From contig NIVC01000393.1 of assembly GCA_002269645.1 (NCBI GenBank), forward strand, positions 310,001-374,000: a stretch of 64,000 nucleotides of DNA. Direction: 5' to 3'. The notes under the pieces were generated by a model. It was given only the letters and a program-made list of their open reading frames with translations, had not been told where the DNA came from and searched no databases. Below, one piece after another: positions 19,485-62,578 of the stretch (the stretch's first letter is position 1; each line of letters starts with the position of its first letter). Source of the stretch: Macrostomum lignano. Its lineage: Eukaryota. The position numbers and the translations under genes are program-made.

Positions 19485-19875
<391 letters not shown>

Positions 19876-20201: not shown

Positions 20202-20288
20202 AAGAAGAGGTTGCTGAAGAGGAGCAACCTCTTCTTTTTAGATTTTGAGCAACCTCTTTCACTGAAGAGGTTGCTCAAAATCTAAAAA
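20202..20288. repeat. Two overlapping perfect hairpins sharing AGAGGTTGCT
   Basis: 14-bp arms at 20202-20236; 24-bp perfect arms at 20235-20258 and 20265-20288 with a 6-nt loop. Confidence 0.85.
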
Positions 20289-20324
20289 TAATCTCCCTCC
20301 TATCTACTTTGAACTTTACTCTCC

Positions 20325-20750: not shown

Positions 20751-21261
20751 CTCATTCTCCTCTATCCTCTCTCCTCTCTGCTTCTCAGAGAGCATTTCTA
20801 CTTTCCTTCCCCATTCTCTGCCTGTCTGTCCTGTGCCTCTCTCCCCTAATCGCGTGGATGTGGTAGCCTGCAGGCTATTACAGGTATTAATTTAATATTC
20901 GGAAATGCACAACTTAAGACCCTCAATCAACCGAGTGAGTCTTTCATGCGTGCAGGCCTCGATCTGGAGATCATTCAGCCGACAATGAGCAGATGGCGAA
21001 ATCGGAGACTCTAGCAGGAGATGTTCTCTTCTGCCTTGTCAAGCTTGAGCGAAATGGCAAGTGTTAGCTGGTTGAGTAAGTTTTCAGTTGAATGCCTCAT
21101 GAGATGAGTTCCTCATGCCAACTAAAAAGGCCTGTGTCTCAGTGCCACAAGCCATTGCTGGCTAAAGTATAAACCTTAAAAGTGTAGTGATCGAAAATGT
21201 TCCCCGAACCCAGTTTAAACGTTCGATTCTTCCCAAATTCAAAATTCTCATTTGAAAACTT

Positions 21262-30374: not shown

Positions 30375-30784
30375 TCTGCGGCAGCAACCTGTCAGGCGTG
30401 TCCGATATGCACCCGGCTCTCGGCCAGCGGGTTTTCACGATCGTCTGCTACTTGCTTATCTTTCTGGTCGGCCTCATCGGGAACAGCCTGGTGCTGCTGG
30501 TCAGCATTCGCGCTAAGCACTATCGCAGGTCTACCGTGCACGCGTACATCCTGCACCTGGCCGTGGCCGACATGCTGTTCCTCCTGTTCTGCGTGCCCGT
30601 GCACACCATCGTCTACGTCTTCGACGCCTACTGGCCGCTTGGCGACTTCGGCTGCCGCTTGGTGCACTTCGTGCAGTACCTCAACATGCAGGCGTCCGCC
30701 TCCTTTCTCGTTGCCATGTCGCTCGATCGGTACCTGGCCATCTCCGACCCCATGAGCAACCGACGACGAAGGGCCAATGCTCAG
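30375..30784 (+). CDS. Rhodopsin-class neuropeptide GPCR (galanin/allatostatin-A receptor-like), exon 2 (TM1-TM3, DRY)
   Basis: GLIGNSLV, LAVADMLF, WPLGDFGC and MSLDRYLAI motifs; acceptor TCTTCCAG| at 30374 and donor CAG|GTGAGA at 30785. Confidence 0.93.
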
Positions 30785-30889
30785 GTGAGAGCTTCAAATG
30801 ATTAACTCGTACTCTTTTTTGACTATCAGCTACCTGTGCCATAAATTTAACATTCCGGTGAACTCATCACGTGCGAAGTTATTAATTGT

Positions 30890-31300
30890 GTCTCTGTGAC
30901 GCCATCGAAAAAAATCATCGATAGATTGTTTCCTGTGGCGTCATTTAGACATCGTGGATCGGATTGCATGCTTCTTGTGACGTCAATTGAGACATTGTAG
31001 AAGGATGGATTTTTCGTGACGTCACGATCGTTTTTGACAAACGATCGTACGTGATGTCACGGAGATCGTTCGTTTTTGTGACGTCATAGAGACATCGTAG
31101 ATTGATCGTTTTTGTGACATCATTGAGACATCGTAGATCGATCGTTTCTGTGACGTCATTGAGACATCGTCGATCGATTGTCTCACTGCGTCGTTATCGC
31201 TTAGTACTCAATTGTCTTAGTCATCAGCCCTTAGAGTGACGTTCTCGATTATCCTTATATCCAGGCTCATAAAGTTAATTTCCTGAAGTGACGTCACAAA
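30890..31300. promoter_or_regulatory. Degenerate tandem repeat carrying five perfect CRE palindromes (TGACGTCA) plus near-matches, in GPCR intron 2
   Basis: TGACGTCA at 30978, 31017, 31079, 31151 and 31289; variants TGACGCCA, TGGCGTCA, TGATGTCA, TGACATCA. Confidence 0.45.
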
Positions 31301-31385
31301 TTGGTTTTAAAACGACGTCTTTCAAGTTCTAATCCTTTCGCAGCTTGTAGAATTGAGTCATTTATGGAAATTAATTTCATTCTAG

Positions 31386-32174
31386 GCGGTGGCGGCCTCT
31401 CTGTGGCTGATATCCGGCCTCATCTCCCTGCCCTGGTTCCTCACCTACCAGCAAGAGACTGCCGGCGGTGAGAAGATCTGCAGCTACAAAATCATCGACG
31501 AACGGCTGAAGCTGACGCTGTTCATTGGCCGGGCCCTGCTGGGCTACGTCATTCCCCTGCTGCTCATCGGCTACTTCTCCGGCAGCATGCTGTACCGGCT
31601 GTGGATCTTTCGCCGGCCGGAATCCAGCACGCAGACGCTGCGCACCAAACGGAAGGTGACGATCCTAGTAGTGACCCTGGTGGCCTCCTTCCTGGCCTGC
31701 TGGCTGCCGTTCCATTTCGTCGATCTGGCCAGCGTCCTGTTCCCCTGCTTGCTGCTGGGTCAGCCGCCCGACGCCGACAGCATCTCGATGTACCTGTCCA
31801 TATCGCAGTGCTGCCTGATCCTCGGCTACGTGAGCTCTTGCGTCAATCCGATCATCTACAACTTCCTGTCCGAGAATTTCCGTCGCGGATTCCGTCAGGT
31901 CCTGTCGCGTCTCTGCCGCAGGCGCGTCCGAAACAGTCAGCAGGTCGCCCTGCCGATGATCCACCTGGGCGAGGCGCGGCACCAGCGGCTGACCAACACG
32001 CTGCGCACGCACCAGCCACCAACCGGCAACAACAGCATGAAGAGGAGCAGCAAGGATCGCAGCGGCAGCAGCAGCGGCACGAAGCGCAATAACAATTTTG
32101 TGGGATTCCAGCGAGTGAACTGCAGCACGGTGGGCTCGACTCAGGCCGGGAGCAGTCAGACCCCGACACCGTGA
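31386..32174 (+). CDS. Same GPCR, exon 3 (TM4-TM7 and C-tail)
   Basis: Acceptor TTCATTCTAG| in phase 0; GYVIPL, FLACWLPFH and SCVNPIIYNFLSENFRRGF, closely resembling the galanin-receptor NPIIYAFLSENFR. Confidence 0.95.
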   Translation, partial: AVAASLWLISGLISLPWFLTYQQETAGGEKICSYKIIDERLKLTLFIGRALLGYVIPLLLIGYFSGSMLYRLWIFRRPESSTQTLRTKRKVTILVVTLVASFLACWLPFHFVDLASVLFPCLLLGQPPDADSISMYLSISQCCLILGYVSSCVNPIIYNFLSENFRRGFRQVLSRLCRRRVRNSQQVALPMIHLGEARHQRLTNTLRTHQPPTGNNSMKRSSKDRSGSSSGTKRNNNFVGFQRVNCSTVGSTQAGSSQTPTP

Positions 32175-39286: not shown

Positions 39287-39665
39287 ATGGCGACTCTCAT
39301 AGAGATTGTAGGGCGATTCTCATAGAGATTGTAGGGCGACTCTCATAGAGATTGTAGGGCGACTCTCATAGAGATTGTAGGGCGACTCTCATAGAGATTG
39401 TAGGGCGATTCTCATAGAGATTGTAGGGCGACTCTCATAGAGATTGTAGGGCGACTCTCATAGAGATTGTAGGGCGATTCTCATAGGGATTGTAGGCCGA
39501 TTCTCATAGAGATTGTAGGGCGATTCTCATAGGGATTGTTGGGCGATTCTCATAGAGATTTCAGGGTGATTCTCATAGAGATTGTTGGGCGACTCTCATA
39601 GAGATTTCAGGGTGATTCTCATAGAGATTTTAGGGCGATTCTCATAGAGATTGCAGGGCGATTTT
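39287..39665. repeat. 23-bp minisatellite GGGCGACTCTCATAGAGATTGTA, about 16 copies, just 3' of the ADAR stop
   Basis: Direct reading. Confidence 0.93.
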
Positions 39666-39766
39666 CTCGATTCAGCAAGACTTGAGTGAAAGAAGTCATC
39701 AAACCGAATCATACTTCAAGTAAACCAGCAATAAGTGAGGCTAAAAACCGGGTAAAAGCAGATCAA

Positions 39767-40651
39767 TCACAAAGTGAACTCCTGCAGCTCCCACGGCTTG
39801 GCCGCCCACAGGCCTTTGCCATTCTGCCGCAGGAAGCCAATCATGGCCGACTTCGCCGATCGGTATTCTGTGCAAGCCTCCTTGGCCTCGCGGTAGGTGA
39901 TGCCGGATGACCCGGTCTTTGGCACCGGGGGCAGCCTCAGCTGCTGCTGGGGCCTCCTGCTCTGAGCCTGGTGCTGCCGCCTCAGCAGGTGCACCAGCCT
40001 GGCATAGTTGGCAAACAGGGCTCGCTTAGACAGTCGCGACGCATTGTCCGAGGCATCAGTGACAGTTTCGGGCACCAGCCGGCCAGTGGACGAGTTCACC
40101 AACTCGGGCTGGACACCGTCCAGGCAGTACCAGTTCAGCGAGCAGTCTGGCGCGGCCCGGGCCTGCCGGGGGTCCCGCTCGGTGACGCCCAGCAGAGCCG
40201 GCTCGGCCACGGGCAGGCCCGGGGCCGGCCGCTGCAGCCGGCCAATCAGAGCGCGCCGGCAGTGCGACCGGTTGAACGACGAGCCAATCACAATCGAGCG
40301 AAGGTACACCGGCTCAACTAGGCGGCTAAGCAGGCAGCCTTGAAGTCGAGAAGGCACCAGGAGGCCACCTTGTCCGAGCAGGACATTGTGAGCAGCCGTT
40401 CGCCGCCGAGGATGCCGTCCCAGGTCTGCGCGACCAGGGTGGCGGGCACCGGGATGGTGCCTTCGCCGCACTCGATCTTGGTGCGCAACAGGCCGCGCGA
40501 CGCTCTGGTCGGGTGCTCGTCCTCGTTGGCCGCTTCGGTGGCGTCGCCAGAAGCGTCGGCCGCGGCGCCGGGGTCCGTGGGCGCGAAGACTCGGGCGTCG
40601 CCGCAGGGCGAAGTGCTGATGTACAGGTGCAGGGACACCTCGGGTCGTAGG
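39767..40651 (-). CDS. ADARB1: ADAR2-like deaminase, last exon (C-terminal part of the catalytic domain), with a 1-nt deletion at about 40347
   Basis: [60 protein letters not shown], then in a shifted frame [22 protein letters not shown]...SRLSKRALF...[11 protein letters not shown]. Acceptor AG at 40653-40652. Confidence 0.92.
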
Positions 40652-40717
40652 CTTTAGAGGCGACAAATGGGGAGATTATAAGCATTTTTGAAACTTTATT
40701 GTAAGAGTTTGGTTGCC

Positions 40718-41146
40718 CCGTGTATTGAATAGGGTTGCCAGTGTGTATTGAATAGGGTTGCTAGTGTGTATTGAATAGGGTTGCCAGTGTATTGAATAGG
40801 GTTGCCACTGTATTGAATAGGGTTGCCAGTGTGTATTGAATAGGGTTGCCAGTGTGTATTGAATAGGGTTGCCAGTGTGTATTGAATAGGGTTGTCACTG
40901 TATTGAATAGGGTTGTCAGTGTGTATTGAATAGGGTTGCCACTGTATTGAATAGGGTTGTCACTGTATTGAATAGGGTTGCCAGTGTGTATTGAATAGGG
41001 TTGCCAGTGTGTATTGAAAAGGGTTGCCAGTGTGTATTGAATAGGGTTGCCAGTGTGTATTGAATAGGGTTGCCAGTGTGTATTGAAAAGGGTTGCCAGT
41101 GTGTATTGAATAGGGTTGCCAGTGTGTATTGAATAGGGCTGCCACC
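40718..41146. repeat. 21/23-bp minisatellite GTGTGTATTGAATAGGGTTGCCA (ADAR intron 3)
   Basis: Direct reading. Confidence 0.94.
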
Positions 41147-41449
41147 ATTCATCAGTGTCAGGTGTTAGGTGTCAGGTAGTTTGCTCATACCTGACAGTTC
41201 ACAGTGGATTCCTACAGCCAGGTAAACAGCTACCTTGCAATCATTCAGACGCATGTTACACAACCGACATTTGATCTGTCACCCGAGAACTGAGCAAGCA
41301 GCAAAATGTTTTAAACTATGAATTTGATGGAAAAGCTGTCTCTGCATTATAATGTACCTGTGCCTGAGCAGAGTTCTGCTAAGTTGTATATATTTCTACA
41401 CTGCATTGTTATAGTCGCGTGCAGGGTTGTTCTCTTGTCAAGCATTCTG

Positions 41450-42445
41450 GCATGTCTGAGTAATCTGTGAGTCTAATGAGAGTAAAATCGGGTAACATCT
41501 GAGTCTCATGACAGTCAAAGCGAGTAATCTCTGAGTCTTATGAAAGTCAAATTGGGTAATCTCTGAGTCTCATCGGAGTCAAATTGGGTAATCTCTGAGT
41601 CTCATGAGAGTCAAGGCGGATAGCCTTTGAGTCTCATTGGAGTCAAATTGGATAATCTCTGAGTCGCATGAGGGTCAAATGAGGTAACCTCTGAGTCTCA
41701 TTGGAGTCAAAGCGGGTAACCTCAAGAGTCTCATGAGATTCAAAGCGGGTAACTTCAAGAGTCTCATGAGAGTCAAAGCGGGTAACCTCAAGAGTCTCAT
41801 GAGATTCAAAGCGGGTAACCTCAAGAGTCTCATGAGAGTCAAAGCGGGTAACCTCAAGAGTCTCATGAGATTCAAAGCGGGTAACCACTGAGTCTAATGA
41901 AAGTCAAAGCGGGTAACGTCAAGAGTCTCATGAGAGTCAAAGCGGGTAACCTCAAGAGTCTCATGAGATTCAAAGCGGGTAACCTCAAGAGTCTCATGAG
42001 AGTCAAAGCGGGTAACCTCAAGAGTCTCATGAGAGTCAAAGCGGGTAACCTCAAGAGTCTCATGAGATTCAAAGCGGGTAACCTCAAGAGTCTCATGAGA
42101 GTCAAAGCGGGTAACTTTAAGAGTCTCATGAGAGTCAAAGCGGGTAACCTCAAGAGTCTCATGAGATTCAAAGCGGGTAACCTCAAGTCTCATGAGAGTC
42201 AAAGCGGGTAACCTCAAGAGTCTCATGAGATTCAAAGCGGGTAACCACTGAGTCTAATGAAAGTCAAAGCGGGTAACGTCAAGAGTCTCATGAGAGTCAA
42301 AGCGGGTAACCTCAAGAGTCTCATGAGATTCAAAGCGGGTAACCTCAAGAGTCTCATGAGAGTCAAAGCGGGTAACCTCAAGAGTCTCATGAGAGTCAAA
42401 GCGGGTAACCTCTGAGTTTCATGAGAGTCAAGGCGGGTAACTTCT
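41450..42445. repeat. 33-bp minisatellite GAGTCTCATGAGAGTCAAAGCGGGTAACCTCAA with a palindromic core (ADAR intron 3)
   Basis: Direct periodicity; 11-aa repeats in the ORF track; degenerate units at the left end. Confidence 0.94.
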
Positions 42446-42895: not shown

Positions 42896-42974
42896 CTGCG
42901 AATATTGGCGACGGCGAGAATGAGGATTGAGGCGATTGACTGACCGAGTTGTACGAGGGGGAGTGCGGGTTTTA

Positions 42975-43640
42975 AAGGCAGAGGGCGGATTTTGATGGAG
43001 AGAGCGAATTTTGGAGAGGGCGGATTTGAAAGATGGGACGGCGGATTTTGATGGGGATGGCGGATTTGAAAGATGGGACGGCGGATTTTGATGGGGATGG
43101 CGGATTTGAAAGATGGGACGGCGGATTTTGATGGAGAGGGCGGATTTTGATGGAGAGGGCGGATTTTGAAAGATGAGACGGTGGATTTTGATGGCGAGAG
43201 CAGATCTTGATGGTGAAGGCGGATTTTGATGGGGATGGCGGATTTGAAAGATGGGACGGCAGATTTTGATGGGGAGGGCGGATTTTGATGGTGAGGGCGG
43301 ATTTTGATGGAGAGGGCGGATTTTGATGGAGAGGGCGGATTTTGATGGAGAGGGCGGATTTTGAAAGATGGGGCGGCAGATTTTGATGGGGAGGGCGGAT
43401 TTTGATGGTGAGGGTGGATTTTGATGGAGAGGGCGGATCTTGATGGTGAGGGTGGATTTTGATGGAGAGGGCGGATTTTGAAAGATGAGACGGTGGATTT
43501 TGATGGCGAGAGCAGATCTTGATGGTGAAGGCGGATTTTGATGGGGATGGCGGATTTGAAAGATGGGGCGGCAGATTTTGATGGGGAGGGCGGATTTTGA
43601 TGGTGAGGGTGGATTTTGACGGGGAGGGCGGATTTTAATG
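42975..43640. repeat. About 19-bp minisatellite GGCGGATTTTGATGGAGAG with an internal higher-order duplication
   Basis: Direct reading. Confidence 0.92.
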
Positions 43641-43659
43641 GTGAGAGGGGGGACTGTAA

Positions 43660-46480
43660 GAAAAACGCCACCCTTTGCCCCAGTGAGCAGTTATCTTTCG
43701 ACCAGCGTCTATCACTTAGCCAGCCATTTTGATATTGAAAAATGCTTAAAAAAAACTATGAAAACCGGGCGGAAGCTTCAATCCATCCAATCTTCGCCCT
43801 CCGCTCTTCCCAATCCCTCCTCACCCAGCCCAACTCTGCATCGCGTGGCGCAAGTTGCGTCACTCAAAAGTCAACACTGAGCTAGAATTTACTGAGCACT
43901 CTCAAAGATGGCGACTTTTTAATGTTGTTGAGTATACATATTTATCATCAACTTGATGATATGAACATGATATTTATCATTTAGTTCAACTATTGATTCG
44001 ATAACTAGAATGCATAATGGACTTACTAGGAAAATTCATCAAAGACACAAGCCTTGTCGAAAATAAATTTAACTAAAATATTTTTACCACCAGCATTTTG
44101 TTATTATTCTTTCATTAGTTGTAATAATTAGTTCAATCAAATACGAGTGTAATATCATAAAATATGAAATTCATCACCCTTGCTGTGCGCCTGTAATAAT
44201 AATCAGCAATCTTTAATGTACATTCCTACTTGCTTTCCAGAAGGACGCGTTCTTCTCTTAAAAAGCCCTCGTCTATACAAATTTGTTTGCTATGTAACAA
44301 AATGGCAACACGCTTTACAGAGTAGCTCATTTCTATCTGCGCTCGCTTGATATCTAACTGAATCAGTTCATTTAAATAAATTGATTAAATTTCTGCCCAG
44401 CAATACAGAGAGTCTAACCTTCAGCAGTTCTCCCAAATAAATTTCATATCTTTAGATTTACGCTTGAAATTTCACGGAAAATCAGTCACACTGTTCTTGT
44501 TTCGAGGGACGTTTTGAGGTTAAAAAAGGGCATAGTGATAGCTATTTTTCAGCATCTCGACATTGAATTATACACTGATGTCGCCTATTAAAACAGCCTA
44601 CAATTCTACACACATAGCAATACGATTCCAACAATACTGCGTCATGGTTTGTTTTAAATTTCAGCTTAATTAGCCCATCCTTAACTCTCGCGGCTTTTTT
44701 AAACCCAAAGTGCCTCTGCTTTTTGGGTTTCCAAAAATTGTCTGGAAAACCATATAGGGCCTATGGCACTTTTGCAATTGTCCGAGTAGAGCGTGTAGAG
44801 ATTTGACGAAGTTAAACGTAGTACACAACATTTTCCAACGCCAAAACTGACGTAGCTGAGTTAGGGTTAAGCCATGGCTCTAAGGAAAGGCTTTGATGCC
44901 AAAGCCTAAAGCTGTGCTGATATCTTGAGCTAGATGGCTGGCTTTTAGGGCGGATGCATTTTTGCTTTCAACCTAGCTTTCCTCGAGAAAAGAACAATAG
45001 TGACTGTGCAAGGTGAAAAGCTACAATGTAGTTTCTTTTAAATTAGTATTTTCTTTGTTACCTTCTCAACGGGGGCGCAGGTGGCTAGTCTATTGTATAA
45101 CCAATACCTATTCTATATATACTATATTTTCTCTAGATTTCTATGACTAGACATTAACGCCTGGAATATGGGAGTGGTCCCCTACTCAGACACCTATTTT
45201 TTGCGTTGCACTGTTAATTTTCGAGCTCTGCACATGGTTCATGCCTTGTTTACGAGTAGTCCTAAAGATCAGAGTGCTAATTATGCCATTGAAGAGGAGT
45301 GTCTCCTTTAGTTGCTTTTCTGAACCACTTCTTTGCAGCAATCTTGACGAAACTGGAAAACGACGTCACTGTACAGCAATTGACATTCAATGAGACGCGA
45401 CAATTAGTACCTTTGTATGTTTTAAGGCAACGCTAGAACAGTGTCGGACGCTTAAATTCAGACCGTTCCTGACGCTTAAAAGCCCTCCTGCTAATACGCT
45501 TACATTATTACTGTCTGATGGGAGCTTTTTGCAACTTGTAAATTGTTAGCACTGACAAGTTGCTTGTAAATCACCCAACTACGAGTAATAAATGGATATA
45601 AAATGTATTGCATGCCTCTAAATGACGGCGACAAGAAGTAAAAACCGGAAACATTACGTTAGTTATAATAAGGCCTACATGGATTGCGTGTCCATTTTAA
45701 GTACACATAGTTCGATACATTCATTCTACTCAATCAAGCTAATTAAGGGAGTCCGACAGTGGGAACAAAGTTAATTCTGGATACTCGGATGGCCTTTACA
45801 ATATATAGCCTCATATTTACAACTTGTTTTGCACGAATTTCGCTTGCACTGATGGCTGACGGACTTACAAAGTATTTGACCGTTAACTGAGCTGGCCTTT
45901 TGGGCTGTTTGTTACAGACCCCATGAAGAAGTGCTCATATTGTTTTCCATGCTGTTATTCATGATTAACTGTAAAAATTTGAATCTGGGGATTTTAGCCT
46001 TATGTTAGAGAAGGCGATGAACTAAGCTTTGCGAGCTACAAACACAAACTCACTGATGAAAGACAAAGCTTATGCATTTTATGCACTCATTAAAACACTC
46101 ATTTTGGCGTCGCAGGCGCTATACCTTTAGCGTCCTGAAGCAAAACTGTTTGATTTCCACAACGAGGGTGGGGGACAAAGCATTTTGGCATGCCCCCCAT
46201 CTCTTTTGCCCCCCTCCCAGTGAAAGCCTTTGAGTTGACAGTGCGCAGTAGATTCTAGCTCAGTATTGACTTCTGAGTGACGCAACTTGCGCCACGCGAT
46301 GCAGAGTTGGACTGGGTGAGGAGGGATTGGGAAGAGCGGAGGGCGAATATTGGATGGACTGAAGCTTCCACCCGGTTTTCATTGTTTTTGAAGCATCTTT
46401 TAATATAAAAATGGTTGCCCAGGTGATAGACGCTGGTCAAAAGATAACTGCTCACTGGAACAAAGGGTGGCGAGTTTTCA
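43660..46480. repeat. Pair of about 240-bp inverted repeats (43660-43900 / 46241-46480, about 90% identical) within ADAR intron 2
   Basis: Manual alignment; the core TTCGCCCTCCGCTCTTCCCAATCCCTCCTCACCCAG.CCAACTCTGCATCGCGTGGCGCAAGTTGCGTCACTCA is shared. The two ORF-track peptides containing SSYLxTSVYHL reflect this. Confidence 0.92.
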
Positions 46481-47593
46481 ATGTTGCCGAGTATACTAGT
46501 TTGGCTTATAAGCCTCTGTATAAACTAAGCTCAACAATTTGTATTGGCAAAAGAGATGCTGTAGGACAAAAAGCAAGCTTGGAACTTTTCTCCAGCTAAG
46601 TCGTTAAGTCACCCCAACGGAAGTTTCATCACGTTCGCTTGAATTTTGCATCTATCTACGCTCAAAAGCGGTATCGTTCTGAAGGTTTGCTTTTTTGCAA
46701 AAGAAGATTCCCAGCCCCTTGTGGAAATTGGATGCCTTGTAGGAAACAGAAGAAGCTTTTTTGATAAGCCAAGGGCTTGCAAGCATACTATAGCAAAACT
46801 GAAGCAGCCCAGGGAGAAACTATACTAGGCCTATCCGATACATATAGCCACTATAGCCTAGTTCAGCTGGCACAAATTAAGGAAGCTTAATCTCAGCATA
46901 ACCAACCTGTTCAAGACTGTGCAACGCTACAATTAAAGACTGTATGATTAGTGCTAATATTCGATATTCCGACTCAGTAAAACTGTTAATTAAAGAGTTC
47001 TACGTGTCAATAAGTGTCATACAAGGACGAATTTATGTAATACTGTTGCGATGCTTTGATGCCCTTCTTGAACTTTATTAATAGACACTAAAAAGTCCCT
47101 CTGATCTATATTATTAACTCTAAAACTAAAAGCCAACCTGCACGAAAATGAAGACAGTAACACAACTTAAAACTCAAAAAAAAACATTGGTAAAACAATT
47201 ATATTTCGATGCTCGAACCGGAAAACAAAAAACGAAAAAAATACAAACAAATTCACAAGCAATCAGTTGCTCAATGACGCTTGGTAACCTTTGTTTCGTA
47301 CATGTACTCGTGTGGACGCAAGACTCAAAAGTTTAAGGCTGTCCAATTCTGAGAACATATGCGGAACAAAAGCTTCCACACTTAATTAATAAGCAATTCT
47401 CATCAGCTACAACAGAAAATCGCAAATGAATTTCAGTGTTGCAATTGATGAGAGTTAAAAAATGCGTCACATTTTCAACATGCTACTGACACTGACAGTC
47501 AGTAGCAAAAAAGTAGTACGATAATATCGGAGAGGCTAATTTTTCTAAAAATCTAGAAGCTAGCAAAATAAGGAAAAAATCAGGTCTACCCAC

Positions 47594-48378: not shown

Positions 48379-49693
48379 TGCGGTTTCTGAGCTGCAACTG
48401 AGAATGAAGCAGAGCACTTCTCAAATTACTTAGGTTACTGTTAAGCCTCCATGTGCCTATAGTAGAGATGCCTAAATCCCTAAGAGATCCCTAAACAGAG
48501 CACGGGAGGGGGGAAGGTGGGGAAGAAGTTCCATTTCCAATGCCCGTTGAACAGTCGGAGTCTATTGCTGCAGTGAAGTCGAGCCCATCTGGAAGGAGCT
48601 GACAATAGAACCAGCTGCAACAGACTCCGCCATTCAATGCGACAGAAAGTAAGTAAAATAAAATTTACTGCGGCAAACCTGATGTGTAGAACAGACGAAA
48701 CTCAATGAAAATAAAATCACCACCCTCAGGAGAGCGCGTGAGGCGATTCGAGTCGATTAGTTGAGTCTTATTTATACCTGAGGCGGCAGAGACAAAATTG
48801 GGGGGGGGGGGGACCGCCCGTCCAACCGGAGGGCGCAGCAATCAATAACGCCCTAGCAAAAACTGCAGTAGATTGTAGCGAAGCAGTCTCAAACGAGTTT
48901 TGGACCAGCTAAGCTTTCTTCCTTGACGAAAGCTATTGGGCTCGGGGCCCACCTCCAAAATGAGTCTCTTAGTTGATTGCTCAAAAGGGGGAAAACAGAA
49001 AAGCATTTTTTTGCAAAAAAGAAAACGTGACTGGAGATTGAGCGAGCGATTGAAATTCTACTAAAAAGAATTTTTGGAAAAATTGAAACAATAAATTTCA
49101 AAGCAGAAACTATGAAAAGATTAAAGCAATCGCTGTGTTTTGCAGTTGTTTGTTGAGAGTTTTAAGCAGGTATGAACCAAATTTCGGACACAGACTTCAA
49201 TGGGAGCTAAGCTGAAACAAGACTCCGAAAGAATTCCCGGCGGCCCCGAAGCTTCCCCGTTGCATTCTTTGATAAGAGAAACTGGAGAATGCCAGACAAG
49301 AAAAACTTATCCCAGTATTGAACAGCATGCCACTGGAATGCCTATTTTGCTATGATCAAAGCAGTGAATAAAGAATAAAGCCAGGTAAAACAAGTTGAAC
49401 AAGCTGAGTGATATAACTCACTGAATTAACTACCATGCTTGCAAAAAAGCATTCGACAGATGATCATGACCCATAGCTTGCTGTGCTATGCGAAATTTAT
49501 TGTTTTAAAGAATAATAATTTCGCGCTAAATTTGATAATAAATTGATAGATGCGATAATATTATTTGGTTAAAACACAATTTTGCTTACATAAATTAAAC
49601 AAGACTTAACACATAACTTAGAAAACATAGCAGCATAATGTGTAACGGGCTAAATAAAATAGGAAACTTAACAACAGAGGTTTGCATGCAAGC

Positions 49694-49935
<242 letters not shown>

Positions 49936-50380
49936 TAAGCGAGGCCTACAATAAGAATGGCATACATATAACAATATACAACATTTGTTTTATTAGCTGT
50001 TTACATACATGTATAGTAAAAGCGTACCTAATTACACAACAGAAATTATTGTTGACTGCCGCTAATCAATCAATAAGGAGAACACGAGACGCAACAATGC
50101 ATGCAGTCAGTGTAGGTCAGTTAAACAGCAACTATAATTCACCTGGGACATGGAACAGAAGCTGCCCGCAAAGCCGAACAGCTACTGAGACTATTACTTC
50201 GTATTATTATTATTATTAGTATTCATATATTAAAACACTACGAAAAAATGGACAATGGGGCAGTTGTCTGAGACAGAGACAGACACAGAGAAGAAAACTG
50301 AAAAATATAAAATATAAAAAACACACAGCGAGAGCTGCGCCCACAACTTGAATCATGATTGAGTTTCCAGTCCAGCGGCC

Positions 50381-51219
50381 TCACCAGTTCCCAGTCACGT
50401 CGCTGGTCCAGTCCTGATCGGCGGCCCGGGACTGCTGCTGCTCCCGCCTCTCCCGCTTGAAATCGCCGCAGCCGGGTCCGCCGTCCTGCGCCTTGCGCTT
50501 CATCCCTCGGCCAAAACCGCCGCCACCGCCGCCTCTGAAACCGCCGCCGCCGCCGCCGCCAAATCCTCCGACAGCGCCGCCGCGGCCGCGCCAGCCCCCC
50601 TGGGCACCGCCGTTGTTGCTGAACGGCCGATTGTAGAAGCCGCCGCCGCCGCCACCGCCGCGACCTCCGCGGAAGCCGCCGCCGCCGCCGAATCCGGAGG
50701 CGCCGTAGACAGCGCCGCCGACAGCAGCGGCGCCATAACGCGGGGCGCCGCCGCCGCGAAAACTACCAACGGCGGGGGCGCGGGCGCCGCCCCAATAGCC
50801 GCCGCTGAAACCGCCGCCCCAAGCGGAGTTGGCGGCGCCCCAACCGCCGCTCCAGCCGCCGCCGCCGCCCCAGCGACCGCCGCGGCCACCGCTGCGGAAT
50901 GGCGCTGCGCCGACGCCCGACTGTTGTAGAATCCGCCGGCGGCGCCGCCATCAAACGCGGCGGCGCCAACAGCGGGCGCGCCGCCGCCCCATCGATGCGT
51001 GTGATGCTCCATCTTGCGCTGCTCGCGCTTCTGCTTGACTTTGTCGGACACTGGCCGGGCCAGGCTGACCTCAAGCAACCCCTTGCCAAGGCCTTCGTGG
51101 CCATTCAGAGCTTCCATTGCCTTCAGCGCGTGCTCGCGCTCTTCGAAGTGCACAAACGCGTAGTCTTTCATGCGCTTCACTTTTTCCAACGGGCCGTGCG
51201 AGCCGAACGCTTCGCGTAC
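50381..51219 (-). CDS. SYNCRIP: hnRNP R/Q (Syncrip)-like, last exon: end of RRM3 plus RGG/Gly-rich tail, with a 1-nt deletion at about 50918
   Basis: VREAFGSHGPLEKVKRMKDYAFVHFEEREHAL...LEVSLARP. After the shift: GVGAAPFRSGGRGGRW...GFRGGRGGGGGGFYNRP...GRGMKRKAQDGG...DWTSDVTGNW*, stop at 50383-50381. Confidence 0.9.
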
Positions 51220-52001
51220 CTGATGATGAGCCAGATGTGAAATAATTATTGCAGAAGACTGTTTTTACACGTTTTACACGAATCGCAGATGTCATTAAGA
51301 TCTGCTTTGAAGAAAATCATCATCGCCAATTCAGCAGATGCCACCTGAATGGATCGGTGGGGGCTCACACAGCGCTTCTGCGAGCTGCTGGCGAAATGAT
51401 TGAATCCTTCACCATTTCCTTGCATAATCCCAATGCCCGAATGTAGTGTAAACGCTCTCTACATGTGGGTGTCAAGCAGCAATTTAAGTAGGCCGAGAAA
51501 CAGCTGCGGTTCAAAAAGGCTGCTCCACCGACTGCTTGGGGAGAGAAGAAAAGAATAACTTAAAAAAGAGGCTGTTATTCTTCCCAGGCCAGATGGGGAC
51601 AAAGAAATTGGCGCTACCCACATAGAACAATTATGAGGAACAATCAACAGACAAATCGGATGGACCTGTTGAATGAGCAAGAGGCAGCAACAGCTGTGGA
51701 CAACACAGTGTGTGCTGAGTTCAATATACAAGATCCTGGAGGCTTGAGTGGGTCTCAGATTAACATGTTTGGAGCTGACGGGGAGTCGGTAATTATTTGC
51801 CTACTTAGCCAATTAGGTGTGCAAAAACACGCTCCGCTGTTGTTCCTAGGCGCTATTAAAACGAAAAGTATGCATCTTTTCTGCCATCAATTGGTTTAAT
51901 TCTGAATGTCTACAAATCAATAAATATGCAATAAATCGGAGAGGGCGCATTAAACAGAACTGATGTGACTTCTGTTGCAGAAGTGAACTTAAATAGACGG
52001 A

Positions 52002-52297
52002 TAAATAGATAATAGATATTGTAGATAGATAGATAGACAGATAGATAGATAGATATTGTAGATAGATAGATAGACAGATAGATAGATAGATATTGTAGAT
52101 AGATAGATAGACAGATAGATAGATAGATATTGTAGATAGATAGATAGACAGATAGATAGATAGATATTGTAGATAGATAGATAGACAGATAGATAGATAG
52201 ATATTGTAGATAGATAGATAGACAGATAGATAGATAGATATTGTAGATAGATAGATAGACAGATAGATAGATAGATATTGTAGATAGATAGATAGAC

Positions 52298-52348
<51 letters not shown>

Positions 52349-52645
52349 CAGATAGATAGATAGATATTGTAGATAGATAGATAGACAGATAGATAGATAG
52401 ATATTGTAGATAGATAGATAGACAGATAGATAGATAGATATTGTAGATAGATAGATAGACAGATAGATAGATAGATATTGTAGATAGATAGATAGACAGA
52501 TAGATAGATAGATATTGTAGATAGATAGATAGACAGATAGATAGATAGATATTGTAGATAGATAGATAGACAGATAGATAGATAGATATTGTAGATAGAT
52601 AGATAGACAGATAGATAGATAGATATTGTAGATAGATAGATAGAC

Positions 52646-52696
<51 letters not shown>

Positions 52697-53030
52697 CAGA
52701 TAGATAGATAGATATTGTAGATAGATAGATAGACAGATAGATAGATAGATATTGTAGATAGATAGATAGACAGATAGATAGATAGATATTGTAGATAGAT
52801 AGATAGACAGATAGATAGATAGATATTGTAGATAGATAGATAGACAGATAGATAGATAGATATTGTAGATAGATAGATAGACAGATAGATAGATAGATAT
52901 TGTAGATAGATAGATAGACAGATAGATAGATAGATATTGTAGATAGATAGATAGACAGATAGATAGATAGATATTGTAGATAGATAGATAGACAGATAGA
53001 TAGATAGATATTGTAGATAGATAGATAGAC

Positions 53031-53081
<51 letters not shown>

Positions 53082-53415
53082 CAGATAGATAGATAGATAT
53101 TGTAGATAGATAGATAGACAGATAGATAGATAGATATTGTAGATAGATAGATAGACAGATAGATAGATAGATATTGTAGATAGATAGATAGACAGATAGA
53201 TAGATAGATATTGTAGATAGATAGATAGACAGATAGATAGATAGATATTGTAGATAGATAGATAGACAGATAGATAGATAGATATTGTAGATAGATAGAT
53301 AGACAGATAGATAGATAGATATTGTAGATAGATAGATAGACAGATAGATAGATAGATATTGTAGATAGATAGATAGACAGATAGATAGATAGATATTGTA
53401 GATAGATAGATAGAC

Positions 53416-53466
<51 letters not shown>

Positions 53467-53693
53467 CAGATAGATAGATAGATATTGTAGATAGATAGAT
53501 AGACAGATAGATAGATAGATATTGTAGATAGATAGATAGACAGATAGATAGATAGATATTGTAGATAGATAGATAGACAGATAGATAGATAGATATTGTA
53601 GATAGATAGATAGACAGATAGATAGATAGATATTGTAGATAGATAGATAGACAGATAGATAGATAGATATTGTAGATAGATAGATAGACAGAC

Positions 53694-53736
<43 letters not shown>

Positions 53737-53922
53737 CAGATAGATAGATAGATATTGTAGATAGATAGATAGACAGATAGATAGATAGATATTGTAGATA
53801 GATAGATAGACAGATAGATAGATAGATATTGTAGATAGATAGATAGACAGATAGATAGATAGATATTGTAGATAGATAGATAGACAGATAGATAGATAGA
53901 TATTGTAGATAGATAGATAGAC

Positions 53923-53977
<55 letters not shown>

Positions 53978-54052
53978 CAGATAGATAGATAGATATTGTA
54001 GATAGATAGATAGACAGATAGATAGATAGATATTGTAGATAGATAGATAGAC

Positions 54053-54115
<63 letters not shown>

Positions 54116-54264
54116 CAGATAGATAGATAGATATTGTAGATAGATAGATAGACAGATAGATAGATAGATATTGTAGATAGATAGATAGACAGATAGATAG
54201 ATAGATATTGTAGATAGATAGATAGACAGATAGATAGATAGATATTGTAGATAGATAGATAGAC

Positions 54265-54301
<37 letters not shown>

Positions 54302-54469
54302 TTGTAGATAGATAGATAGACAGATAGATAGATAGATATTGTAGATAGATAGATAGACAGATAGATAGATAGATATTGTAGATAGATAGATAGACAGATA
54401 GATAGATAGATATTGTAGATAGATAGATAGACAGATAGATAGATAGATATTGTAGATAGATAGATAGAC

Positions 54470-54520
<51 letters not shown>

Positions 54521-54669
54521 CAGATAGATAGATAGATATTGTAGATAGATAGATAGACAGATAGATAGATAGATATTGTAGATAGATAGATAGACAGATA
54601 GATAGATAGATATTGTAGATAGATAGATAGACAGATAGATAGATAGATATTGTAGATAGATAGATAGAC

Positions 54670-54706
<37 letters not shown>

Positions 54707-54800
54707 TTGTAGATAGATAGATAGACAGATAGATAGATAGATATTGTAGATAGATAGATAGACAGATAGATAGATAGATATTGTAGATAGATAGATAGAC

Positions 54801-54851
<51 letters not shown>

Positions 54852-55004
54852 CAGACAGATAGATAGATAGATATTGTAGATAGATAGATAGACAGATAGA
54901 TAGATAGATATTGTAGATAGATAGATAGACAGATAGATAGATAGATATTGTAGATAGATAGATAGACAGATAGATAGATAGATATTGTAGATAGATAGAT
55001 AGAC

Positions 55005-55047
<43 letters not shown>

Positions 55048-55196
55048 CAGATAGATAGATAGATATTGTAGATAGATAGATAGACAGATAGATAGATAGA
55101 TATTGTAGATAGATAGATAGACAGATAGATAGATAGATATTGTAGATAGATAGATAGACAGATAGATAGATAGATATTGTAGATAGATAGATAGAC

Positions 55197-55247
<51 letters not shown>

Positions 55248-55415
55248 CAGATAGATAGACAGGCAGACAGATAGACAGACAGATGGATGGATAAATGGAT
55301 AAATATATAATAGAAAGATAGATAGTTAGATAGATAGACAGACAGATAGACAGATAGATATAAAGATGGATAGATAATAGATAGATAGGCAGATAGATAG
55401 AAAGATGGATAATAG
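52002..55415. repeat. 3.4-kb (GATA)n-derived array with a 37-bp higher-order unit GATATTGTAGATAGATAGATAGACAGATAGATAGATA
   Basis: Regular recurrence of ATTGTA and GACA variants; lies in a Syncrip-like intron. Confidence 0.96.
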
Positions 55416-55416
55416 A

Positions 55417-55783
55417 TTTTTTTTATTAGAGGCAGGGGGGTTGTGTGCACCCTGTCGCACTTTAAGCGACATAGGCACACAACCGGCGAGAGGCATTACT
55501 GCCCATTCCGCCGACTCCCCTGAGCAGGCACACATGACAAGCGCGCGGATACGTACGCAGGCACACACTCACACAGGAGTGTACAGCGGCCCTAACTTTA
55601 TATTATCGTTAGGCATGTACACTTCACTGCGCCTTGGGGGGTTGGCTCTCAAGGCCGTTAATTGCACGAGCAGAGCCAAGCCGAGATTCCAATTCAGCCC
55701 CAAATTAATGTGATTGCACTTGGAATCGAGCCTGGGTCGCTGGCACACCAGAGCAGCTGCGCCACCGCTGGGCTACGGCCCCC
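55417..55783 (-). mobile_element. tRNA-derived SINE, about 367 bp
   Basis: The minus strand begins GGGGGCCGTAGCCCAGCGG. A box TAGCCCAGCGG at 55775-55765 and B box GGCTCGATTCC at 55732-55722, 32 nt apart. There is a 3' stem-loop (GTTGTGTGC...GCACACAAC) and an AATAAAAAAAA tail. Confidence 0.7.
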
Positions 55784-55838
55784 TCATGGATAGACAGATA
55801 GACAGACAGATGGGCAGACAGGCAGGCCCAATTCTCAC

Positions 55839-56104
55839 CTGATCCTCAGTGACATCAGAGCTCAAGTTCTTCACATAGAGAATCTTCACATCGGACAGGT
55901 TGACCTCTTCATTGTCGTCAATGGGATCGGCCCAGTCCACGTAGATGTCGCTGTTAAAGATGCGGACTCCGCGCCTGCCCAGCTTCTTCTTGGCGTTGGC
56001 GGCGTCAATGTGCGAGTCGAAGTGCAGAAAGCAGAAGCCGCGGTTCTTGCGCTGGGTGTTGAGGTCGTCGGGCGTCGAATAGACGATGACGTCCTTCAGA
56101 TTCT
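55839..56104 (-). CDS. SYNCRIP: hnRNP R/Q-like exon (RRM2 end and RRM3 start)
   Basis: NLKDVIVYSTPDD...KNRGFCFLHFDSH...YVDWADP...VKILYVKNL; phases match the neighbouring exons; donor GTGAGA. Confidence 0.93.
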
Positions 56105-57101
56105 CTACAAGTTTTGTAGAGTTGATCGCCCAAAGGCGGTTCGTGGGAGAGAATTAAATCGAATTTGAGTTCGAATATGCGGAGTTCAAGTATGAATTTA
56201 ATAACTTTGAATACCCAATTCAGCCTTACTACTTAACTAAATATGACTTCCCAAAAACTTTAACATTTGTTTATATCATTGTTTATAAAAAACTTTTTAT
56301 TGGCAATTTTTACAAAGGAAATTATTTGTGTACTTTAGAAGAGAAAATAATATTTGGCAGATCTGTATGAATCTATCAAAAGTTCGAATTCAAATAAATT
56401 TGTTTGAGAGTACACAATGCGTTTAATACCCAGTTGGCCTGAGCGAATTCAGATTTAAACAAAATTATTGCGCAATGAGCGAATTTGCCTACTTACAAAT
56501 TGACAGTCAAGTAGTAAGGAGTCAATTTTATGCTTATTTATATATAAACCAACAGGTGAGTACGGATATAGGAAAAGTGAAATTGCATACGATGGGGCAC
56601 AGACGCTACAAACCTTGGCGTGTGCTTACAAAAATGCTGAATGAATAATAAATGCAAAAATTCATTAAAAAACTTCTCAATAAGCGAGCACACGGACAGG
56701 CAGTGGACAGCACCACACTTATCAAACTTCAGCATAGTTTATTAAGGCCGTTTACTATGTATTTAAAATACTAATGTTGCTATTAGTAGTAGTAATAGAA
56801 CATAAGATTTTAGGCCCAAATTCTGTACTACAATAATTGACAGCAATATATTTCCAAGCAATTTGGCAAATCAAGCAAATTTTAAAGTTAATAAATTGAA
56901 TATTTTGACAAAACTTGAAAAAGCAAACAGCAATTTGAAGTTAAAATTGAGTAAGCAAAAGTGCTTTTTCCAACCCCCTTCACTCACCCATTTTAATTGA
57001 AAACAAAAATGAGCAAAATTTTGCTTCTATAATTTCCTGAACCACCCGAATTCTTATATTACTAATAGTAGTTAAAACAATAGATTTGAACAATTTTGTA
57101 C

Positions 57102-57237
57102 CTGTCAATTTGGAGAATTCCTCCATAATTTCGTCTCTACTCTTCGTTTTCGGTATATTCCCAACGAATAGGCGCAGGTTAGGAGTGGAAACGTTCACCT
57201 TGATTTTCTTCCCGGGACGAATTTCATAGTCGTTGAG
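57102..57237 (-). CDS. SYNCRIP: hnRNP R/Q-like exon (RRM1 end and RRM2 start)
   Basis: LNDYEIRPGKKIKVNVSTPNLRLFVGNIPKTKSRDEIMEEFSKLT; acceptor TTTTATAG|, donor G|GTACAA. Confidence 0.93.
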
Positions 57238-58039
57238 CTATAAAAATGAGAATTGCGATTTTCAATTGTCTTAATTAGCAATTTTGATAAATAATTTTCC
57301 AGCTCAATTTTATCTAACATGTTACTCGGCCTGTCGCACAAACAATGCTAGTTTTGAGTAAACCAATCCCTCACACAGTCAGACGGCACAATCGCATCAA
57401 TCTGTTGCATCTATCAATCATTCATTAATACGAGCATAATATGCAAAATTAAAAAAACACAACTGCTTGAAACGGAAATGAACAATTACCAAAACATCGT
57501 TTGATTCGGTTTTTAAACTCTGCATCTCTAGTCAGTGCGAGTTCGCATCAAAATCTAATACGCTATGCTTTTGCTTTTGCATTTACTTTTGTCAGTCCTG
57601 TTGCCAACTAAGCCGATCAGTTGTAGTTGCCGGTCACTTTCTCACAGACTAAAAGCCAAGCCAAGCTGTAGACAAAAAATGCGAGTCCTTACCTATGAAA
57701 TAAAACTAGCAAAATCAAGGTAATTTTAGGTGAACGGCAGGAGTATCCTTGACTGTGTTATTCATTCTACATGACTCGTCATCTAATTAGTGCTACATCT
57801 GTATTTTGACACTCGACTTGACAATAAAATCTTGTGGTATTCTTACCTTATAAACGTACGCCCACCATGCTATACTGACTTCTGAACTGCACTGACAGAT
57901 CATATAGAAATCTAGATTTAGATTTTCTAGATTTCTATAGACAGACATTTAAAACCAGCAATAGTTTATTTGTATGTAGGCAGTAAATGAGTACTTATAA
58001 GTACGCTCCAGAATTTCTGCTACTCATAGTAGTACTCAC

Positions 58040-59097
58040 CGTGTCAACAGCAGCTTTAGCCGAGTCCTTATCAACGTAGCGAACAAACGCGTAGCCGCGG
58101 TTAAATCCCGTATTTGGATCCACCATGATGCGCATCTCGTAGATGCTGCCAGACTGCTCACAAAGAGGCACGAGCTCGTCCTCGTACAGATCCTTTGGCA
58201 GCTTGCCAAGGAACACCTCGGATTGGTGCGTTGGCGGCTCGCCGTCCCAGTTCGATGGCGGCCCGTAGTGCCGCTGGCCGCTGGTGACCTCGTGATGAAA
58301 GCCGGTCCGCTCTAGAAGAGCCTTGATGGTGGCCTCGTTCGGCCCGTGGCTCGGCTGCGCGTGGCCGCCAGTCTTGGCCTCGTGCCAGACTCGCAGAATC
58401 GAGACCAGGTGGGCGCTCCGGTCTTTAATCTCGGACAAGTCGGTCTCGCTGAACTCTTTCACCGCGCTATTGATCTGATCCTCCGGGAAGTCTTTCAGAC
58501 AGGCCAGCGCTTCTTGGCTGAGATCGCGATAGCCGATGGCGCCTGTGGCAAACAGATTCTGCACCTCAGTAGCCACAGCCTCGCTAATTCCCTGCTTCAT
58601 CAGCCTAGTGAAGTCGTCAATCGATTCGTCGAATTCTTCTTCAGCCGGAGCAGCTGCAGCTTCGGGGGCATCGGTTGGGGCGGCAGCAGCGGTTTCTTCA
58701 GTAGGCGCAGCGGCAGGTTCTTCAGCAACTGTAGATGCGGCAGTTTCCACTGGTGCTGCCGGATGAATGTTCTCGGTCACTACAGCGGGAGCTTTCTGAG
58801 CTTCCGGTTCAGGTACAGGTTGTGCCACCGGTTCAGGTTCAGCAGCCTGCTCGGGAGCTGGTTGCTCAGGAGCTGCAGGCTGCTCAGGAGCTGGTTGCTC
58901 AGGAGCTGGTTGCTCATGCTCAGGAGCCGGCTGCTTGGGCACTGTGCTAGCCTCCTCTGCAGCCTCTGCAGGCTGCTGCTGCTGCTGCTGCTGCTCAACC
59001 GCATCCCCCTGCTGCTGGCTGGTGGACAATTCCTGGCTGCTGGAGTCGGTGACTTCCTGGCTTTCGTCCGCACCAGCTGACGCTGTCGAGTTGTCAG
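58040..59097 (-). CDS. SYNCRIP: hnRNP R/Q-like exon: P/A/E-rich extension, acidic domain and RRM1 (start codon on an unlocated upstream exon)
   Basis: GPNEATIKALLERTG...VTSGQRHYGPP...EVFLGKLPKDLYEDELVPL...NRGYAFVRY. Acceptor CCTACTAG| at 59098 (phase 1, giving (M)ADNST...); donor GTGAGT at 58039. Confidence 0.92.
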
Positions 59098-60231: not shown

Positions 60232-60298
60232 CACTTGTGAAGAGCTCTAGATTTGAATTGTCAAACGCAGTACTGTGTTCAACTGGATCTGGATTCAA

Positions 60299-62578
60299 AT
60301 GGATGGCGGGCTCAAACCCCCAAAGCCATTCTGCTTTGATGAGCACAAGGCGGAAAACTGGAGTAAATGGATTTCTGCGTTCGAGCTTTATATGACTGCA
60401 ACCAAGTGTGACAAATCACCGGCTAAAGTGCAAATAGTGACACTGCTAACAGCCATTGGAGAAGAAGGTTGTGAGATTTATTCAACTTTCGAGAAATCGG
60501 AAAGAGACGAAGAGCTGTCAAAAGTGACGAAACTGTTTGAAGAATATTGCAAGCCGAGTGCAAACGAAACTTTCGAGCGCTACAAATTTTGGCAATGCAG
60601 GCAGAATGAGCATGAGAGCATTGACTCATTTGTCAGCGGCCTGAAACAACTTATCAAGACATGCTCATTCGAGAAGCCAGCCTACGAATTGACAATGAAC
60701 GAATCAATAATCAGAGATCAGATTGTCCTCGGAATCAGAGACACAGAGTTGCGAGAACGGCTTCTACGTGAGCAGGAGTTGACGCTAGATAAGGCTATAT
60801 CTATCTGCCGTGCAAGTGAATCATCAAAGACCCAAGTGCGGATCATGACGGGAAACACCTCCGGAGAGATTTCGAAATACATCCAGAGAGAAGTCAATTC
60901 TGTTGTGAAGCCTCGCTCAACAGGCAGACCAGATCTCAAGTACAAGGAGAGACGACCGAACAAAAGGTTTGGGTCCAATGGAAAGCCGATGGTAGGAAAG
61001 TCGGAGGGTTGCTCATTCTGTGGTAAGAAACACAAGAAAGGTTCATGCCCTGCATATGGCAAGACGTGCAAATCTTGCGGAAAGCAAAACCACTTCAGCA
61101 ACGTTTGTCGGAATAAGACCATAAGAGCCTTGGATCAAAATACAAATGAAAGCTCAGAATCTGATTGTCAAGATTCGTGGGTCATGTCAGCATCTCTGCA
61201 ACCGGGTGGCAACGACAGAGACAGTAGAACAACTGTTGGTATCAAAATCGAAGGTCAGCTGGTGAATTGCAAATGCGACACAGGAGCGGACGCAAATGTA
61301 CTCCCTAAACATCTGCTTAGGCGGATTGCACCAAACACGTCGATACAAGCAACGTCTTGCAGACTCTTTTGCTATAAAAGGTCGCGCCTAACAGTCGCAG
61401 GGAAGGTACAATTGAAACTGGAATATGAAGGAGTCAAGCATGAAAATGAATTTATTGTGATTAAAGAGAGGCTCATTCCACTCATCGGATGGAAAACTGC
61501 AGAAGAGATAGGCCTGGTGAAATTCAACTTCGGAGTTTCTGTTCAACCTGAAGGGTTTAAGTCCACGTGGACAGATGAAAGATTTCTTCGAGAGTATCCC
61601 GATGTCTTTGAAGGAACAGGTTGCTTACCTGGGAGTTATCACATCAGCCTGCACGATGACAAAGAATCTTGGATGGATCGCCCTCAAAGAATCCCGTTTG
61701 CAGCAATGCAACCTTTGAAGGCTGAATTAGATCGCCTGGTTTTGGATGGACTCATCACCAAGTGTGATGAGCCCACGAAGTACGTTTCAAATGTGGTCGT
61801 CGTCTGGAAGGCAGACAAGACTATACATCTTTGCCTAGACCCTCAGCATCTGAATGCCAACATAATGAGAGAGCAGTATCAGATACTGTCTTATGACGAA
61901 ATTATTGCAGAAATCGGAAACGCTGCTCTGTTCTCAACTTTTGATGCGACTGCGAGTTTTCACCAGATTGCATTGGATTATGAAAGTTTGTTGATGACGT
62001 GCTTTCACACACCTTTTGGACGATATCGTTGGCTGAGAATGCCCTATGGAATTTGTTCCGCATCGGAAGTCTACCAGAAGCAAGTTCGGGAGGAGATCTC
62101 GGACAAGATCAGAAACTGCAACAATTTTATTGACGACTTCATTGTTTGGGGCAAGACTGTTGAAGAACACGATGAAGCTGTGAAGCAGCTTATGGAAATG
62201 TGCCATGCGAAGAATTTGCGCCTGAATTATAAAAAGCGGAAAGTCAGATTGAAGGAGTTGAAATTCCTTGGCAACATACTTTCGCACACCGGAATTAAAG
62301 TCGACCCAGACAAAGTAAAAGCAATGCGCGATATGTCCCGACCAGATACTCTATCCGGCAATGAGAGAAAGCAGCAACTTATGCGATTTCTAGGATGTGC
62401 AAATTTTTTGTCCAAATTCATTTCAGATCTGTCATCTAAGGCAGCACTGCTATGCACATTGCTGACAAAGAATGCTCAGTGGAACTGGACAAATGAACAC
62501 GAAAAAGCGTACGAATCAATTTTGCAGAGTCTTTGCGACACACCAGTCTTAGCTCGCTATAACCCGAATGCACACTTA
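60299..62578 (+). CDS. Uninterrupted gag-protease-RT part of the Gypsy polyprotein
   Basis: Part of the ORF 60275..62665; homology shifts frame at about 62579. Confidence 0.9.

Follow-up and report, generated by a model that had tools for sequence, protein, structure and literature searches.

Opposed MITE-like repeats, probably forming an incidental hairpin, in an intron of an ADAR2-like gene of the flatworm Macrostomum lignano

Transcripts that encode ADAR enzymes can be substrates of their own products. In rodents, self-editing of Adarb1 (ADAR2) converts AA to AI and so gives rise to a 3' splice site, with 47 nt added (PMC9479739), and in Drosophila, S/G self-editing of Adar recodes an exon codon (PMC9479739). 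Inverted Alu pairs in introns, of which humans carry very many, are the standard human ADAR substrate (PMC8797187). In the planarian Schmidtea, mRNA editing is mediated by ADAR2 (PMC8797187), which makes an active flatworm ADAR2 plausible; a search of the literature for work on ADAR or editing in Macrostomum came back empty. Here we analysed a long inverted repeat in an intron of an ADAR2-like gene of Macrostomum lignano, contained in a stretch of 64,000 nt (positions 310,001 to 374,000 of contig NIVC01000393.1; hereafter the window, whose numbering is used unless a homeologous locus is named). A first-pass annotation of this DNA had proposed the repeat as a self-editing, autoregulatory double-stranded RNA (dsRNA). 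We consider it likely that the repeat consists of two opposed copies of an element resembling a MITE (miniature inverted-repeat transposable element), which were in place before a genome duplication, have drifted neutrally and form an incidental intronic hairpin with no sign of regulating ADAR. Opposed mobile-element copies that form dsRNA within an intron are a known pattern, to which this locus would add one more case.

The two arms were delimited by repeat finding, blastn self-comparison and gapped alignment, the last of which merged the two collinear inverted pairs given by repeat finding into full arms (43660-43905 and 46235-46479). They are identical at 222 of 247 aligned columns (90%), the differences being 14 transitions, 8 transversions and 3 gap columns, and they share a core of 74 nt with one mismatch. 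Between them lie 2329 nt of AT-rich DNA with no open reading frame (ORF) above 56 aa. These measurements bear out the geometry described in the first-pass annotation, namely arms of about 240 bp with about 90% identity, differences that are mostly transitions, a near-perfect core of about 70 bp, a distance of about 2.3 kb, and a location in the ADAR intron between the exons for the double-stranded RNA-binding domains (dsRBDs) and the catalytic exons (Table 1). Neither blastn nor an nhmmer search with a profile of the unit described below detected a further arm copy in the 64 kb window.

The assembly, Mlig_3_7, holds three homeologous subgenomes (S, L1 and L2) of a neopolyploid, with about 2.2% single-nucleotide polymorphism divergence (PMC10733133). 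Three M. lignano ADAR2-like genes fell into one 90% cluster (loci L001, L002 and L003), L003 being the window's own copy on contig NIVC01000393.1, which matches the window at 100% identity across the intron. From an alignment of the six arms (two from each of the three homeologs) with their flanks, we defined a common unit with terminal inverted repeats (TIRs) at both ends of each arm. A full-length copy of 296 nt is found at the A1 site of L001 (11843-12138), starting with GTATACTCGTCAACATTGACAACTCGCTACCCTTTG and ending with CAAAGGTAACTTTTTAATGCTGTTGAGTATAT. Both copies in the window are incomplete. A1, the first to be transcribed, has lost its inner (3') TIR through a deletion of about 43 nt common to the window and L002, and A2, the second, is missing 17 nt from the start of its outer (5') TIR at the border with a minisatellite, as it is in all three homeologs. 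Of the termini that remain, the 5' end of A1 (46496-46461) and the inner end of A2 (43903-43937), once the latter is reverse-complemented, agree at 30 of 36 positions. A degenerate 22-nt TIR motif had two matches in the window, both at these termini (that of A1 at 46475-46496), with 0 expected, and the two ends of the full L001 copy align with a score of 13, compared with 5.8 ± 1.2 for shuffled ends (maximum 12 in 1000). The unit is flanked as TA/TACTC...GAGTA/TA; the TA flanks are compatible with a TA target-site duplication, and since TATA is palindromic they are possibly part of the TIR. Because each arm has its own 36-nt TIRs and TA/TATA flanks, the inverted repeat is, as far as its sequence anatomy tells, two opposed copies of one 296-nt non-coding MITE-like unit, an origin from two opposed repeat copies that the first-pass annotation had also listed.

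By the usage adopted here, a MITE is shorter than about 800 bp and without coding capacity; the unit measures 296 nt, and no ORF across an arm exceeds 80 aa. A translated query with the arm returned no match in the protein database. Scans of the whole intron against Rfam (E ≤ 1) and for tRNAs were empty, leaving an origin from a short interspersed nuclear element (SINE), small nucleolar RNA or microRNA unsupported. As to superfamily, the TA flanks would fit Tc1/mariner. The window also contains a PIF/Harbinger-like element with a DDE transposase ORF (18499-19224, minus strand) and 41-nt inverted repeats (17705-17745 / 19445-19485). This element (about 17705-19485) was ruled out as the autonomous partner of the unit, its TIRs being unrelated.

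Both arms and the spacer, the latter with indels, are present in all three homeologous ADAR2-like copies, so the repeat pair is older than the genome duplication. Being fixed in all three subgenomes, it is not the recent polymorphic insertion that the first-pass annotation had named as one way in which its proposal could fall. Pairwise divergence among the three homeologs was 4.2-6.5% in A1, 0-1.8% in A2, 2.8-3.5% in the spacer and 2.5-5.1% in the intron upstream of A1. Within the arms, 40 columns were variable, comprising 14 fixed differences between A1 and A2, 21 that vary in A1 only, 5 that vary in A2 only and none that vary in both. The 14 fixed differences predate the duplication because they are common to all homeolog copies. 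With no site varying in both arms, there was no compensatory change, and thus 0 of the 26 post-duplication changes had been compensated in the partner arm. This pattern suggests that the arms are conserved no better than the surrounding intron and have drifted like it since the duplication. An autoregulatory element would be expected to show conservation above the neutral level and maintained pairing, neither of which was seen in a comparison of three homeologs with limited power. In L002 only, a 9.8 kb insertion (11246-21051) is situated upstream in the same intron, at a point corresponding to window position ~47112; its ORFs do not exceed 155 aa, and tandem arrays with units of 17 and 23 nt account for about 4.4 kb of it.

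On the sense strand, the arms are predicted to form 231 pairs, including 10 G-U pairs, and the helix runs for up to 96 bp without interruption. The predicted duplex energy is -429 kcal/mol, far beyond the -147 ± 5 kcal/mol obtained with one arm shuffled, and when the full 2.8 kb element is folded to minimum energy, A2 is the pairing partner of 232 of the 245 A1 positions. A long duplex within one nuclear transcript, as would characterise a promiscuous ADAR substrate, is hence obtained in silico, both arms lying in one intron. If the intron persists in the nucleus, the duplex is plausibly a suitable substrate for any dsRNA-binding enzyme including ADAR, which is a property of every such repeat pair. 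Long potential hairpins are not rare in this genome, as the same window holds other inverted repeats of 122-131 nt that derive from opposed minisatellite arrays. These arrays occupy 10394-16032, and their inverted repeats are 93-97% identical (e.g. 11472-11602 vs 12101-12231).

We propose the following course for the two-copy repeat. Two copies of the 296-nt TIR-bearing element would have come to lie in opposite orientation, 2.3 kb apart, within the ADAR2-like intron; both would have been in place before the recent whole-genome duplication and would then have drifted like the intron around them. In the pre-mRNA the arms would pair into an imperfect duplex of ~231 bp with the spacer looped out. 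By analogy with any inverted pair in an expressed intron, the hairpin would probably be deaminated promiscuously by nuclear ADAR, and it would be removed together with the intron.

Two other origins of the repeat were weighed. The whole 2.84 kb could be one non-autonomous foldback or long-TIR Tc1-like transposon (TIRs of ~280 nt) that arrived in a single insertion, as might be suggested by the equal-length arms bracketing a non-coding spacer, the identical arrangement in all three homeologs and the lack of any solo arm in the DNA examined. In such an element, however, the outer arm ends would be the only termini, whereas here the inner ends also bear the 36-nt TIR with TA/TATA just beyond it, which is the signature of self-contained units. 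The 14 pre-duplication differences between A1 and A2 fit two diverged family members as well as they fit decay in situ, and the outer end of A2 is truncated, which would obscure outer target-site duplications. A single foldback insertion is unlikely in our judgement. We give still less credence to a transposon-free local inverted duplication of ~280 nt of intron DNA, e.g. by replication template switching: the only two copies known are both in the ADAR intron, as that origin would have it, but a random segment is not expected to bear 36-nt inverted repeats at its own ends, bounded by TA.

The functional alternative came from the first-pass annotation, according to which ADAR binding or editing of the duplex would gate an acceptor at 46455/46454 and thereby a poison exon, giving a dsRBD-only product or one targeted to nonsense-mediated decay. 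ADAR self-editing has precedent in rat Adarb1 and Drosophila Adar (PMC9479739), the predicted duplex is long and stable, and the repeat is retained in all three homeologs, though retention in homeologs 2-5% apart is the neutral expectation. An acceptor motif and an in-frame stop do exist, the 66 codons in phase to a stop at 46255 being read exactly as annotated, and consensus-like donors follow 401 and 586 nt downstream (the closest, at 46053 and 45868, giving exons of 401 or 586 nt). The "good cryptic acceptor" at 46456-46455 is thus present, but it is not distinctive. When the 63 YAG sites of the intron were ranked by a simple pyrimidine count upstream of YAG with an AG-free zone, it was tied or beaten by 7 others, making it one of 8 equally pyrimidine-rich sites, and one competitor (46313) is in the same arm A1. 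The other five arms read TTTGCCCCAG at the acceptor position, so the motif belongs to the consensus of the element, and L001 has lost 1 nt immediately behind the AG, which alters the frame. Arm-derived sequence is absent from all five protein models deposited for the three copies, which show only the exon 2-exon 3 junction. A chimeric junction-peptide query (exon-2 end, 66-aa frame and second arm frame) yielded 13 word candidates, none of which scored, a null that is uninformative given that the searched protein collection seems to be without M. lignano read assemblies. In addition, the arms do not rise above the intron background in conservation and show no compensatory change, and the window's gene copy is frameshifted in its deaminase domain. 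With arms that evolve like the intron, no compensated change, an ordinary acceptor and no arm-derived protein, the claim of a dedicated, independently evolved feedback loop was not supported. ADAR autoregulation by the repeat is neither supported nor strictly excluded, and we assign a self-editing, exon-gating duplex only a very small chance. An equally faint prospect is that the hairpin was co-opted as a sensor of nuclear ADAR activity: binding or editing of the duplex, in which the AG of the 46455 acceptor lies, would tune the inclusion of a premature-stop exon of ~400 nt (46454-46054); if true, this would be an ADAR feedback loop that evolved in a flatworm separately from those of rodents and flies. 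If the cryptic exon were used in an ADAR-dependent way, it would constitute a third, independently evolved ADAR autoregulation circuit.

Several points weigh against two neutrally drifting MITE-like copies. In about 130 kb of M. lignano DNA there was no unit copy outside the ADAR intron, and an nhmmer profile of the six arms likewise gave no additional copies in the window and the three loci; with no copy seen beyond this intron in the DNA covered, membership of a dispersed family is a proposal drawn from the anatomy of the unit. From the sequence, a target-site duplication is indistinguishable from a palindromic terminal TATA. Three recently diverged homeologs offer little power against weak selection on pairing. 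Finally, A2 is unusually alike between copies, and so is the adjoining spacer: window 44221-43640 is 99.8% identical to L001 13840-14421, while these homeologs differ by 5-9% a few hundred bases away. Similarity that extends from A2 into the adjacent spacer points to gene conversion among the copies more than to constraint.

Table 1. Coordinates of the ADAR2-like gene, the inverted repeat and associated features in the window (TIR, terminal inverted repeat; dsRBD, double-stranded RNA-binding domain)
Feature	Position	Strand	Remarks
ADAR2-like gene Mlig022298g1		-	M. lignano assembly Mlig_3_7 (GCA_002269645.1), contig NIVC01000393.1
ADAR2-like exon 1	48378-47761	-	encodes dsRBD1 and most of dsRBD2
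Coding exon 2	47681-47594	-	C-terminal part of dsRBD2; donor GCG/GTGGGT, phase 1
Repeat-bearing intron, exon 2 to exon 3	47593-42896	-	4.7 kb, between dsRBD and deaminase exons
A1, first-transcribed unit copy	46219-46496	-	unit orientation on minus strand; arm proper 46235-46479
5' TIR of A1	46461-46496	-	GTATACTCGGCAACATTGAAAACTCGCCACCCTTTG
Acceptor-like motif in A1	46455-46470	-	CCACCCTTTGTTCCAG; AG at 46456-46455; TG follows
Hypothetical frame after cryptic acceptor	46255-46454	-	phase 1; 66 codons to TAG 46257-46255
Spacer between the two unit copies	43938-46218		ordinary AT-rich intron DNA without long ORFs
3' TIR of A2	43903-43937	+	CAAAGATGGCGACTTTTTAATGTTGTTGAGTATAC
A2, second-transcribed unit copy	43660-43937	+	unit orientation on plus strand; arm proper 43660-43905
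19-nt minisatellite	42958-43656		GGGGAGGGCGGATTTTGAT, about 35 copies, higher-order period 312; abuts truncated A2 outer end
Coding exon 3	42895-42496	-	deaminase domain start; HAE motif
Exon 4	40651-39768	-	PCG and SCSDK motifs, stop codon

The exon model of the host gene is consistent with the deposited protein PAA83948.1, which also agrees at the exon 2/exon 3 junction (STYCG/SGDSASP); exons 1 and 2 are separated by a 79-nt intron. The conceptual protein is 98% identical to an M. lignano protein and 36-38% identical to vertebrate ADARB1 over 99% of its length. As expected of an ADAR2-type gene, the model holds two dsRBDs and an A_deamin domain with the HAE, PCG and SCSDK zinc-ligand motifs, and Pfam PF00035 and PF02137 were detected on a homeolog protein (P0001). 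The reading frame of the window copy is nevertheless not intact. Its exon 4 lacks one G at 40346/40347 on the minus strand (CTCGAC, compared with CTCGGAC in both homeologs), and this 1-nt deletion causes a frameshift with a premature stop inside the deaminase domain. PAA83948.1 (482 aa, labelled "partial") terminates at the same place as the frameshifted frame. Either this homeolog has become a pseudogene or the long-read assembly has an indel error here. Among the neighbouring genes, we observed a rhodopsin-type G-protein-coupled receptor at 30398-32174 on the plus strand, with two exons seen, and, upstream of ADAR, a gene for an RRM protein of the hnRNP-R/Q type (50500-59029, minus strand), which adjoins ADAR in L001 as well as in L003.

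The 19-nt minisatellite next to A2 was compared with the unit. Growth of the array from the MITE TIR was rejected, as the best match was to the MITE core (positions 138-182) and was marginal, with a score of 17 against 10.5 ± 2.2 and 5 of 500 shuffles as good. Judged from this match, the minisatellite may have been seeded by a third copy of the element. Many minisatellites are also found in the other ADAR introns and the intergenic DNA (39500-42441 and 49600-55500), among them arrays at 40720-41144 and 41469-42441 whose units measure 23 nt and 33 nt. At 51989-55480, a repeat of about 3.5 kb forms a single long open frame by chance. Further along, 60275-62665 carries a 796-aa gag-protease-reverse transcriptase ORF of a Ty3/gypsy-like long terminal repeat retrotransposon; its best match in the protein collection shared 44% identity and was not an M. 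lignano protein, and the matches included no M. lignano relatives.

A probable MITE family and an ADAR2-like homeolog with a frameshift emerge from the analysis, and the 245-bp endogenous hairpin, present in three homeologs, could be a positive control for the detection of hyper-editing in M. lignano. As in Drosophila Adar, the enzyme encoded by the ADAR transcript would act on that transcript itself; the fly case recodes an exon, and nothing comparable was seen in the flatworm gene. Rat and mouse Adarb1 come closer, with an intronic duplex in the pre-mRNA of the editing enzyme itself and an alternative acceptor that would truncate the protein. In the rodent gene, however, editing creates the AG at a conserved, site-specific structure, whereas the flatworm AG is encoded in the genome and its duplex is transposon-derived, without a conservation signal and with no alternative transcript known. 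In anatomy, the unit resembles the Tc1/mariner (Stowaway-like) MITEs, being 296 nt long and non-coding, with TIRs of ~36 nt and TA flanks, and residing inside a gene; unlike for those elements, no autonomous partner or other family members of the unit were found in the ~130 kb covered. In comparison with the inverted Alu pairs of human introns and UTRs, the main promiscuous substrates of ADAR, the host is a flatworm, the element is a TIR-bearing MITE-like DNA element rather than a retroposed SINE (it showed no tRNA or 7SL head), and the duplex is known from prediction. The two nevertheless share the arrangement of opposed short mobile-element copies within a few kb of one intron, a long, imperfect dsRNA, here predicted, that spans a few hundred bp within one molecule, and pairing on which no selection is seen.

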